Shown here piece by piece: positions 19,979 to 29,896 of a DNA stretch of 64,000 bases (position 1 is the first letter of the stretch; each line of letters opens with the position of its first letter). A model generated the notes under the pieces. The model did no database searches, had not been told where the DNA came from, and saw nothing but the letters and a program-made list of their open reading frames with translations. Origin of the DNA: Piromyces finnis finn (taxonomy: Eukaryota; Fungi; Neocallimastigomycota). The position numbers were made by a program, and so were the translations under genes. Where the stretch lies: assembly GCA_002104945.1 (NCBI GenBank), contig MCFH01000040.1, forward strand, positions 62,001-126,000, written 5' to 3'.

Positions 19979-22900
19979 ATGTTAAACCTTTTTAAAAACG
20001 ATATAAAAGGTATAACAACATATTTAATATTTAATTAATATAAAGATGTGAAAAGTAATAGTAAAAACAATTAATAAATTAAAATATATGTAAATTATTA
20101 TTTTATTAAAGAGTTGTATATAGAAAAGTTAAAAGGATTAATTCAAAGAGATCATGTAAAGACTGATAAGTTAATTGGAGAAAGATATTATGAATGGGAA
20201 ATTAAAAACTGGAGTAAACTTAACAATATAGAATATAGTTCACAATTTTCAGCTGGAAACTGTAAATGGTATCATTATTATTTTATTAATTGTATAAACA
20301 TAAATATATAGCTATATTTGAGTGAAATTCAATGAAATTAATAATATTTTATTTTGCTAAATTAATTTGATTAATACATTTCTATTAAAATAAGGAGAAT
20401 AAAATTAAATAAAAATGAAATTACTAATGAAACAGAAAAGAGTGAAAAAAGAAAAAGTAATTTAAGAAATAGTTTATTTGGGAAAAAAAGAAATACACAA
20501 GAAGATAATGAAATAGGAAATCCTGATTATATATCAATAAGCTTAGAAAATCTTGATAATTTAAAAGACACCTTTGATTTGGAACATATTTTTGCTAATT
20601 ATATTGTATCTTTAAGAAATTCTAATGATTATTCTTCCTATTATGCGAATGGTATGATTTTTATCTAATTTATCTTTTTTATTGCAAAATTATACTGTTT
20701 TTTTTTTTTTTTTTATTTATAAGCTTCTCAATAATTAAATATTAAAATATATCAATAGATTCAACCTCTTTATATTTTAATAAAGTTACCAATACAAAAA
20801 ATATCTATAAAAATTTTGAAAAGAAATGTTTATATGAATTGACAAATGAATCTTATAGACCAATAATAGAAAACGATAAAATAATTATTGGAATTTATAT
20901 AAAAGTATATAAATATAATAAAGGTATATATATATCTTATCACAAATAAATGACTTTTTTTATTTCTATTTATTCTGTAAATATTTTATATGTTAATAAT
21001 GCTGTTTTTATAATGATATAGAACAATATATTGATGAACTAAGACAAATAATAAGTAATGATGAAATGGAAGATGATATTATAGGTGAAAATTATTCTGA
21101 AATCGAAATTGATAATTGGAATAAAATTATTGAATATGGTTATGGACCCAAAACCATTAAAGAATTTACTATCGGGGAATATAAATGGTAAAAGAATCTT
21201 GGATTTTTGTTTTTCTGTTTTATTATTAGGCTATATTAATTATTAATCATAAAAAATATATAAACTTTTAATAATAATAAGGGCTATAAAATTACATTTC
21301 TTTGGTAAAAGAAAACGGAATGAAGAAAATTTTTATGTATATGTAACTGATTTAACTAAAGATAAATACCATCATGATAATAATAAAAATAATTATGATG
21401 AAAGAGATTCATATTGTTCAAAATTCTTGCTTTCTTTTTGTAATAGCAAAGACTATTCCAATTTCAAAGTTATTTGTAAATAAGTCATTTTTATTTTTTA
21501 TTTATAATATTTTATAATTTTTTAAAACAAAAGATAAAAATACATTAAAATTGCTTTTATAATATATATACAAAACAGCATCCTCTCTTTTTAGTAAAAG
21601 TAAAACAAATAAAAAGGTTAATTCAAATTTTATCAATAAAACTAATTATAAAAACTTTATTAAACCATTAATAAAGGATAATAAATTAATAATTGGAGTT
21701 TTTGCTATGCTATATAATGATAAAAAGAAAGGTTAATAGGAAATAATTATTGTTTTTGTTATTTTGGTTTTTTTAATAATAAATATAAAGTATTATACAA
21801 TATTAATTTAATTAATCATATATGAAAAAGATCAATATATTGAAGATTTGAAAAATCTAATAAATGAAGATAGTTCACAAGTTAGTAATATAATAAGAGA
21901 AGATTATAATGAATGGGAAATAAAAAATTGGGATGAGATGATAAGTTCAACATATTCTGGACCAAAATTCAATTCGAAATTTTCTTCAGGAGATACTGAT
22001 TGGTAATTAAATAGAAGTAATATATTGATACTTTTTTTTTTCTATTGTCTTTATTAATTTTTATAATTAATAGGGATATTAAAATATCAAAATTAAATAA
22101 CAAGTATCAAGATTTATTAAAGATAGCACTTAGTAATATTAATATCATAGAGAGTAATAATCAAAATTTATATGCAAGATACCTTGCTTCTTTTCGTGAC
22201 AGTAATAGTTTTAAATATTATAAAACAGAATGTAAGTATTATTTCACATTTATATAATTAATCTTAGAATAATATTTTTTGAAATTTAAATACAAATTAT
22301 CTTTAAATAATTTCAATTTATAGTATCAGATATATTTTATTATAGCAAAAATTTTAAAAGCACGTATCCGTACTTTTTATCAAAAGAAAAATACGAAAAT
22401 TTTATCAAACCATTAGTTAAAGATGGTAAATTAATAATGGGCATATATATTCAAGTTTTTGAAAGCCATGCTTTAGGTAAAATATATATATATATTTATT
22501 TATCAATATTATATAATGATACTAAATATTAAAAATTTAATGAAAAAATATTCTTTTATAGAACATCGTATAGAGAATGCAAAGAATGTTGTAGAAGCTA
22601 ATAATAAAGGTTCATATGAAGTTATTAGTAATCAATATTTCGAATGGAAAGTTAAAAATTGGAATCACTCAAAACGCTATGTATGTAGTCCAAAATTTTC
22701 TGCTGGAGGTTTTAATTGGTAAATTATAATACATTCATTATATAATGATATTATTTTTAAGAATCTTATAATAATATACTTTTAATATTTTTTATTACAA
22801 AGGTGTATTTATATATATCCAAATAGTGATGATAAATCTATATATATAAAGAATTTGGATATATTAAAAGATAAATCAATTCATATATTCGCAAATTATG

Positions 22901-28900: not shown

Positions 28901-29896
28901 GATGATGAAAATGGTAAAGAAGATATTCAAGAAGAAGGTTATTATGAATGGGTGATTAATGACTGGGAAAAGCTTGAAGATATGACTTATAGTCCTGAAT
29001 TTATGATCGGTGAATACATATGGTATTTACCAAAATATATAATAATTATATTAATATAAATTATATTCTAAGTTATTTATTTATTTAATATTATATTAAA
29101 GGAAAATAAAACTTTACCCAAATGGTAATGATAAAGTGAATAACAATGAATACGTTTCTGTATTCTTAGAAAACATGAATACTAATAATTATTCAGACAC
29201 ATATGCAAAATTTGTACTCTCCTTCCGTAATAGTAATGACTATTCTAGTTATAGAGCACACAGTAATTAATTTTTCCAATAAAAAACTAAATATCTTTTT
29301 TTTTTTTCTATTAAGAATAACTACTAAAAGTTAATATGTTTTCAATTAATATTATGTTAATTAGGTATCTCATCGCTATTTTATTTCAGTAAATATAATA
29401 ATTCCATTGGTTTCAGGCAATTTATAAAAAAGAAGGAATTATATGTAAAGAATAATGAATCTAATATACCTTTAGTTGAAAACGATAAAATAACTGTTGG
29501 GGTTTACATTCAAATATATAGAAATAAAATTGGTATTTTCAATCTAATTCCTATATAATAATAATTAATAATATAATAATAATATTTATATACAAGTATT
29601 TTAACCTTTTTTTTTTTCTATATTATTGTTTAAATGTATTAATATTAGTTGATGATCCATATGAATTAAAACTTTTAAAGCAACCTTATAAAATACTACC
29701 AAAAGTAATAACTAATAATCCAGAATTGACTTATGATAACATTCAATCACCTTTATTAAAAAATGAAACAGTTACATCATTGAAGAACGATTCAGATTTA
29801 ATTAGTTCAAATAAAAATGAAATATTACCAACACAATTAATAAAGGATGAACCATCATCATCATTAACAAGAAGCGATTCTATTTTTTCTTTATAA
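19979..29896 (+). CDS. Poly-MATH (TRAF-like) protein: 12 tandem MATH domains, about 38 exons, roughly 2,000 aa, no catalytic or BTB domain seen
   Basis: ATG 19979 (MLNLFKNDIK). Exon A of each module starts at 20112, 21022, 21831, 22562, 23415, 24176, 24930, 25895, 26671, 27388, 28120, 28863; last exon 29649-29896. Each module repeats QYIEELK..YYEW.I.NW..YSP.F.AG..W | .IKLYPNG..ISIYLEN..ANF..SIRN..DYS | YFSK..G...FI.K..L..PL.EN.K..IG.YIR.Y, the MATH strand pattern of USP7/Ubp15-type domains. Confidence 0.88.
25098..25346. repeat. (AAC)11(AAT)72 microsatellite filling an intron of the MATH gene
   Basis: Read directly; lies inside intron 25087-25348. Confidence 0.97.

Follow-up and report, generated by a model that had tools for sequence, protein, structure and literature searches.

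A probable single colinear gene for a putative twelve-domain MATH adaptor in Piromyces finnis

The major ubiquitin enzymes SPOP-CUL3, USP7 and the TRAFs recognise their substrates through MATH domains. In plants and nematodes, MATH-only (class I) proteins contain these domains in tandem with no other recognisable domain, most of the described members carrying two copies and none more than about four (PMC3664471). Here, we analysed a locus of the anaerobic gut fungus Piromyces finnis finn that encodes a much longer array of this kind. The window, by which we mean the whole 64,000-nucleotide (nt) stretch of DNA that was studied (contig MCFH01000040.1, positions 62,001 to 126,000), is very AT-rich, with a GC content of 15–33%, and positions 19979–29896 of its forward strand were read as one gene of 39 exons for a product of 2074 amino acids (aa) with twelve MATH domains. 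Like the MATH-only proteins, this product has tandem MATH domains without any further domain. It differs from them in its twelve domains (possibly about fifteen in a paralogue of Anaeromyces robustus) compared to about four at most, in the short helix (consensus QYI.ELK) that stands before each domain and in a domain order that is fixed across genera. In the ESM Atlas, the nearest clusters by sequence features are likewise MATH-only proteins of nematodes, arthropods and plants, 245–455 aa long. Twelve diverged domains kept one-for-one are an unusual form of the known MATH-only type, and not a new kind of protein.

Other carriers of the domain resemble the window gene in fold and differ from it in architecture. 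SPOP, the MATH-BTB adaptor of CUL3 ligases, is described as presenting many MATH domains to multi-motif clients (PMC9998093, PMC8138767). The window gene shares with SPOP the MATH fold and, in part of its modules, the W-G-F groove region; however, it has no counterpart of the BTB/BACK domains of SPOP, and it joins twelve different domains covalently, whereas SPOP oligomerises a single one. The TRAF-like domain of USP7/HAUSP (Ubp15) was the best profile match in the Protein Data Bank (PDB), but USP7 has one MATH copy in place of twelve, together with a UCH protease and a USP7 C-terminal domain, neither of which is present here. TRAF proteins, in turn, possess a long trimerising coiled coil plus RING/zinc fingers, in contrast to the helix of about 9–12 residues that precedes each MATH domain in the models described below.

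The gene was reconstructed, by hand and with a script, from a regular series of short open stretches distributed over the three forward frames. It comprises a 31-nt first exon, twelve modules of three exons each (A, B and C) and a tail exon encoding 81 aa; the start codon is the ATG at 19979, and a TAA closes the tail exon at 29896 (Table 1). The A exons are about 157 nt long, the B exons 155–257 nt and the C exons 153–174 nt. The 38 introns, all of them bordered by GT-AG, measure 68–262 nt (median 95 nt), and their GC content is 11.5%, compared to 22.6% in the exons. The exons of the modules begin uniformly in phase 1 (A), phase 2 (B) and phase 1 (C), and the C exons also exit in phase 1 throughout. 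In 12 of the 12 modules, moreover, a tryptophan codon is split TG/G between the end of A and the beginning of B. The modules are 149–193 aa long and share pairwise identities of only 21–49% (mean 33%). The rebuilt gene model thus bears out the preliminary description of this DNA, which had noted twelve highly diverged modules with common intron positions and phases (1/2/1/1) and a split tryptophan codon; its uniform three-exon cassette holds for the modules generally and fails for module 4, the exon C of which has an additional in-frame intron. The regularity of the cassette is far beyond chance, and its source is the common descent of the copies. With regard to precision, homology, phase and GT-AG signals served to place the junctions of modules 1–8, and for some C exons, such as C7, the 5′ end may lie about 30 nt away from the position given. 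The 12 junctions between A9 and the tail exon agree exactly with BCR36DRAFT_116834, a P. finnis protein of 719 aa in the public annotation, which corresponds to residues 1356–2074 of the model with 100% identity and free of gaps.

The modules are MATH domains, as the preliminary description had proposed and as Pfam, PDB profile and fold comparisons all support. Against the Pfam family MATH_2 (PF22486, curated cut-off 32 bits; MATH itself is PF00917), the 719-aa protein scored 174.9 bits in four stretches (E = 1.2e-51). Taken singly, modules 12 and 10 reached 74.6 and 50.4 bits, and module 11 fell just below the cut-off with 31.7 bits. Modules 1–8 were tied to the family via BLAST to the A. robustus orthologue (46% identity), for which MATH_2 gave 468.8 bits in 11 stretches (E = 2e-142). 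A hidden Markov model (HMM) of the module found 12 of the 12 modules with 117–201 bits, scores that are partly circular in that the HMM was built from these twelve and twelve A. robustus modules. Single exons are too short to score: a Pfam match was obtained for one of the 12 A exons (E = 0.022), and PDB profile searches with alignments of the A exons and of the C exons were too weak. A profile of 55 whole modules, including modules 10–12 of the window, matched the USP7 TRAF-like domain (1.8e-10) over nearly the full module length, as well as SPOP (3.5e-8). The AlphaFold model of module 12 (predicted local distance difference test score (pLDDT) of 91.8 and predicted template modelling score (pTM) of 0.88) shows a short helix and then an eight-stranded antiparallel beta sandwich, for which Foldseek returned the MATH domains of USP7 and SPOP as the best matches (probability 1.00, target-normalised template modelling (TM) score of about 0.8). 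No USP, UCH (C19) protease, BTB, RING or other Pfam family besides MATH, and none of the TRAF-type RING/zinc-finger families, was detected by Pfam in the 719-aa annotated part or in the full-length A. robustus orthologue, in line with the USP- and BTB-free composition reported earlier. A secreted or cellulosome scaffold protein was also considered and was rejected, given that the model protein has no signal peptide and no hydrophobic or membrane segment.

The same order of modules recurs in related genomes. The A. robustus orthologue BCR32DRAFT_295511 (2092 aa) is 46% identical from end to end, and mapping this protein back to its locus yielded 38 exons, i.e., a 31-nt first exon, twelve A/B/C triplets in phases 1,2,1 and a tail. 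Modules 1–10 were present in the same order at the syntenic locus of Piromyces sp. E2 (L001), which also lies downstream of ALG11 and is interrupted by assembly gaps, and on a 12-kb metagenome contig of the Joint Genome Institute (Ga0216346_10007322, hereafter L002). By its placement in the module tree, a Pecoramyces protein covers positions 5–11. A. robustus and Piromyces sp. E2 share both the N-terminus (MLN.(F/L)KND.K) and the 31-nt length of the first exon. The best A. robustus match was found at the same position for 11 of the 12 window modules, and a maximum-likelihood tree of 57 modules contained well-supported groups at eight of the 12 positions. Together, these matches and tree groups show positional orthology of the modules in at least four genera. 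In the same tree, positions 5 and 7 pair, as do positions 6 and 8 (modules 5–8, 23415–26561), with the A. robustus copies unresolved at the base of both groups; this topology probably reflects an old duplication of a two-module block, from 5-6 to 7-8. Two metagenome scans, one with the 719-aa protein and the other with the module-12 alignment as the query, found no orthologous transcripts or loci.

We also estimated the ratio of nonsynonymous to synonymous substitution rates (dN/dS) by the NG86 method for modules 1–10, leaving out exon C4a. The values were below 1 in all these modules (0.13–0.64 per module, 0.24–0.26 overall), and YN00 gave 0.06 for one pair. The highest and thus most relaxed values were those of module 4 (0.28–0.64), which is also the shortest and the least conserved of the twelve. 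These data are best explained by an array that had all its modules before Piromyces, Anaeromyces and Pecoramyces diverged, and the positions of which have since been kept under purifying selection. A per-module phylogeny with dN/dS and a search for paralogous arrays were among the checks that the preliminary description had suggested; the former led to the positional orthology described above, and the latter to arrays with the same cassette in A. robustus.

A profile of the 12 A exons, a signature of the helix plus the first strand, searched against 1.84 billion representative proteins, matched 142 proteins, many of them in several stretches. Among the matches that were looked up, all those with a species name belong to Neocallimastigomycota (Anaeromyces robustus, Piromyces sp. 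E2, Pecoramyces and Neocallimastix). The three A. robustus paralogous arrays that were mapped, of seven, 11 and four modules, use the same cassette in the same phases, and paralogous arrays terminate in SH3, ankyrin or HECT domains. The A. robustus protein P0180 (1310 aa) has five MATH modules of the family, followed by SH3 and a complete HECT domain (HECT E = 2.4e-89), a predicted architecture that links the arrays to ubiquitin transfer. On A. robustus MCFG01000349.1 (L010, 8001–21000), two adjacent partial models encode 1570 aa and 784 aa; the former has 11 modules and breaks off within a B exon, and the latter has four modules plus ankyrin repeats. Together they possibly represent a single gene that encodes about 15 MATH modules followed by ankyrin repeats, which would be larger than the array in the window. 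Members of the family carry the label ‘MATH domain-containing protein’ in public databases and are uncharacterised there, and our literature search found no paper joining MATH domains with Neocallimastigomycota.

Exon shuffling follows an established 1-1 rule, by which recombination within introns can duplicate a unit with phase-1 introns at both ends and leave the frame intact. Because the same cassette and phases build the paralogous arrays that were checked, the frame symmetry of the window gene is a trait of the family that goes back to ancient duplication of modules in tandem, and alternative splicing is not required to account for it. The array would have grown by tandem duplication of the three-exon unit, a duplicated module staying in frame because both outer introns are in phase 1, and the 5-6 to 7-8 duplication was probably one such growth step. 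The locus is, in this respect, a clean example of array growth via the duplication of a phase-1-flanked unit.

The peptide groove of USP7 and SPOP is lined by the W-G-F strand, in which cancer mutations of SPOP are concentrated. In our alignments, the D-W-G-F peptide-binding strand of USP7 coincided with the W-G-F region of exon C. The canonical form (LWGF) occurs in module 10 only, and partial forms occur in modules 4, 6, 8, 9, 11 and 12; the variants are specific to their positions and are kept across genera. From these motifs, perhaps seven modules would bear a groove, each with a differing specificity.

Taken together, a single colinear gene for a fixed, covalent multivalent MATH adaptor is, in our judgement, probably the best explanation of the locus. 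The product would be a soluble protein of about 2074 aa, made of a 10-aa N-terminus, twelve units of a helix and a MATH/TRAF beta sandwich, and a short tail. Modules 4, 6 and 8–12, module 10 most clearly, would retain groove variants for short peptide motifs. Because these variants are retained and are position-specific across genera, the chain could engage several different motifs, or a single client with many motifs, at high avidity. The paralogues that end in SH3, ankyrin or HECT would point to a role of the family in recruiting partners, probably for ubiquitin signalling. The multivalent scaffold proposed in the preliminary description is a reasonable reading of twelve MATH domains that lack a catalytic or BTB partner. 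With twelve different MATH domains per chain, kept one-for-one across genera, the locus amounts to a natural experiment in covalent multivalency, and it may point to an unstudied ubiquitin or signalling scaffold in anaerobic gut fungi, with which the HECT, SH3 and ankyrin sister arrays agree.

Several observations weigh against this explanation. The glycine of W-G-F is absent in modules 1, 2, 3, 5 and 7, and to speak of twelve binding sites would thus be too strong. On L002 the array stops after module 10 and is followed by an (AAT)n run and then by an unrelated HR1/RhoGEF-like gene (8550–12149) that is not present in the window; either the orthologue is shorter in this lineage or the contig was assembled chimerically at the repeat. 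No match was obtained when the flanks of L002 and those of the A. robustus locus were compared with the window by tblastx. Synonymous divergence (dS) of 0.4–1.6, together with a strongly AT-biased codon use, makes the dN/dS values rough. Finally, the public annotation has two genes here, one for 1214 aa (19979–26150) and one for 719 aa (26733–29896).

Among the alternatives, an array that serves as a structural rod or spacer, or that assembles with itself, its MATH modules not being peptide readers, fares best, although we consider it unlikely. MATH domains of TRAFs also mediate self-association, and the five modules without the groove motif would fit such a role. Furthermore, the helix was packed between modules in a three-module model (pLDDT 84, pTM 0.67), which suggests some fixed packing between neighbouring modules. 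This reading is opposed by the conservation of the position-specific groove variants, by the fusion of paralogues to SH3, ankyrin and HECT, which are recruitment or ligase modules, and by the closest solved folds, which are those of peptide-bound USP7 and SPOP.

Two separate genes, as called in the public locus table, are a still less likely arrangement than a rod. The first public model breaks off after the first two bases of B8, with no stop codon, and appears, by its length, to be about 10 aa shorter than our reading of the same stretch; the second begins at an internal methionine (26733) within exon A9, in the middle of a MATH domain. The 583 nt that lie unannotated between them (26151–26732) consist of B8 minus its first two bases, the whole of C8 and the start of A9, all with open frames, GT-AG sites and correct phases. 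Both B8 and C8 are intact, with 58–71% aa identity to Piromyces sp. E2 (L001) and L002 (58–75% when the start of A9 is included), and the dN/dS of module 8 is 0.15–0.41. We favour a single gene because B8, C8 and A9 are intact and conserved and because the A. robustus orthologue is one model of 2092 aa; the split was therefore read as an annotation artefact. In practical terms, the gene is divided in the public annotation of P. finnis, which lacks C8 entirely, B8 except for two bases, and the beginning of A9.

The third alternative is Dscam-like or combinatorial splicing, proposed in the preliminary description, in which A, B and C exons of different modules would be joined, or modules skipped, to give fewer or chimeric MATH domains. 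As in Dscam clusters, homologous exons with compatible phases stand in tandem, and the phases permit such joins arithmetically. The A. robustus paralogue P0003, in addition, has an in-frame partial module, in which a 96-nt phase-1 exit is followed directly by a C exon. In Dscam, however, one exon of a cluster enters each mRNA, whereas in the models and transcripts on record for this family all copies are used together, which contradicts mutual exclusion outright; the flanking constant exons of each Dscam cluster are missing here too. Both the 2092-aa A. robustus model and the 719-aa P. finnis model contain all exons in order, and an intron-free 1640-nt metatranscriptome contig of an orthologue joins modules 10, 11 and 12 and the tail in this order. 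Between independent contigs of paralogous transcripts, no module-sized gaps were found. Such models and contigs are a record of the main isoform only, and rare isoforms would escape them. The best run, X1, the RNA label of which is a guess, contained 0.50 of the sampled words of 22400–28399, close to the 0.485 expected for all exons and no introns, which is a weak and uncertain hint that this stretch is transcribed.

Other features of the locus also speak against exon choice. No intron element conserved at matching positions between species, of the kind that docking and selector RNA elements represent in Dscam-type clusters, was found when introns, apart from that between B4 and C4a, were compared by BLAST with three related loci, a test that is weak at 11.5% GC and that returned low-complexity matches at non-matching positions. 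The A/B junction falls within a beta strand, at the invariant tryptophan, and each position is retained under purifying selection as a separate orthologue with a distinct groove motif. In fungi, intron retention dominates and exon skipping is rare. A fixed 12-module order under purifying selection, the outcome that the preliminary description had itself named as refuting its proposal, is what the comparison with A. robustus revealed, together with positional orthology, dN/dS below 1 in modules 1–10 and colinear records. From these records, one colinear mRNA with all exons appears most likely, and combinatorial splicing is, in our view, very improbable. We attach a similarly slight probability to minor P. 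finnis isoforms beside the colinear mRNA, whether by skipping of modules or C exons or by cross-module joins of A, B and C; if they did exist, the adaptors would come in a graded series, with a reduced number of MATH domains or with chimeric ones.

Module 4 departs from the cassette in a way that was traced to one lineage. When left unspliced, its exon C meets four stops, and removal of the additional 69-nt intron (Table 1) restores the frame. An intron with the same donor and phase is present in Piromyces sp. E2 (L001, ~11690–11830) and in L002 (~3673–3790), and the A. robustus exon C of module 4 is an unbroken 168 nt (L008, 9923–10090). Because the intron is common to these three Piromyces-like genomes and absent in A. 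robustus, we read it as a portion of an exon that was turned into an intron in one, Piromyces-like lineage, and module 4 may serve as an example of such a change. A pseudogene reading of the stops in module 4 was rejected, since they fall in this conserved intron.

Table 1. Exons and other features of the MATH array gene in the window
Feature	Position	Strand	Details
First exon	19979–20009	+	31 nt: Met, 9 codons and 1 base; exits in phase 1
Module 1	20112–20923	+	A 20112–20268, B 20395–20651, C 20759–20923; orthologous module at the same position in L002 and A. robustus
Module 2	21022–21731	+	A 21022–21187, B 21282–21475, C 21579–21731
Module 3	21831–22476	+	A 21831–22002, B 22074–22231, C 22324–22476
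Module 4	22562–23296	+	A 22562–22718, B 22803–22957, C4a 23093–23176, C4b 23246–23296
Extra phase-1 intron in exon C of module 4	23177–23245	+	69 nt; contains in-frame stops
Module 5	23415–24079	+	A 23415–23568, B 23654–23820, C 23915–24079
Module 6	24176–24832	+	A 24176–24320, B 24423–24580, C 24665–24832
Module 7	24930–25798	+	A 24930–25086, B 25349–25521, C 25625–25798 (5′ end of C ± 30 nt)
Microsatellite (AAC)n(AAT)n	25097–25347	+	~250 nt; fills the A7-B7 intron (GT 25087, AG 25347–25348)
Module 8	25895–26561	+	A 25895–26051, B 26149–26312, C 26394–26561
Module 9	26671–27308	+	A 26671–26827, B 26896–27056, C 27144–27308
Module 10	27388–28023	+	A 27388–27544, B 27621–27784, C 27853–28023
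Module 11	28120–28791	+	A 28120–28276, B 28362–28549, C 28627–28791
Module 12	28863–29532	+	A 28863–29022, B 29102–29262, C 29365–29532
Tail exon	29649–29896	+	81 aa and stop; no Pfam match; first ~30 aa align with orthologues

Further features of the gene are of a local nature. Exon B of module 1 holds an insert of about 30 aa that is rich in lysine, glutamate and asparagine. The A7-B7 intron is, with 262 nt, the longest of the gene, and a poly-asparagine coding run in module 7 (about 80 asparagines in the naive frame) was rejected, since the microsatellite that would encode it is intronic. The tail is probably disordered, as judged by its composition and weak conservation. In the public locus table, the gene is flanked upstream by the ALG11 mannosyltransferase gene (~17250–19290) and downstream by the Atg6/Beclin (APG6) gene (~30471–32724).

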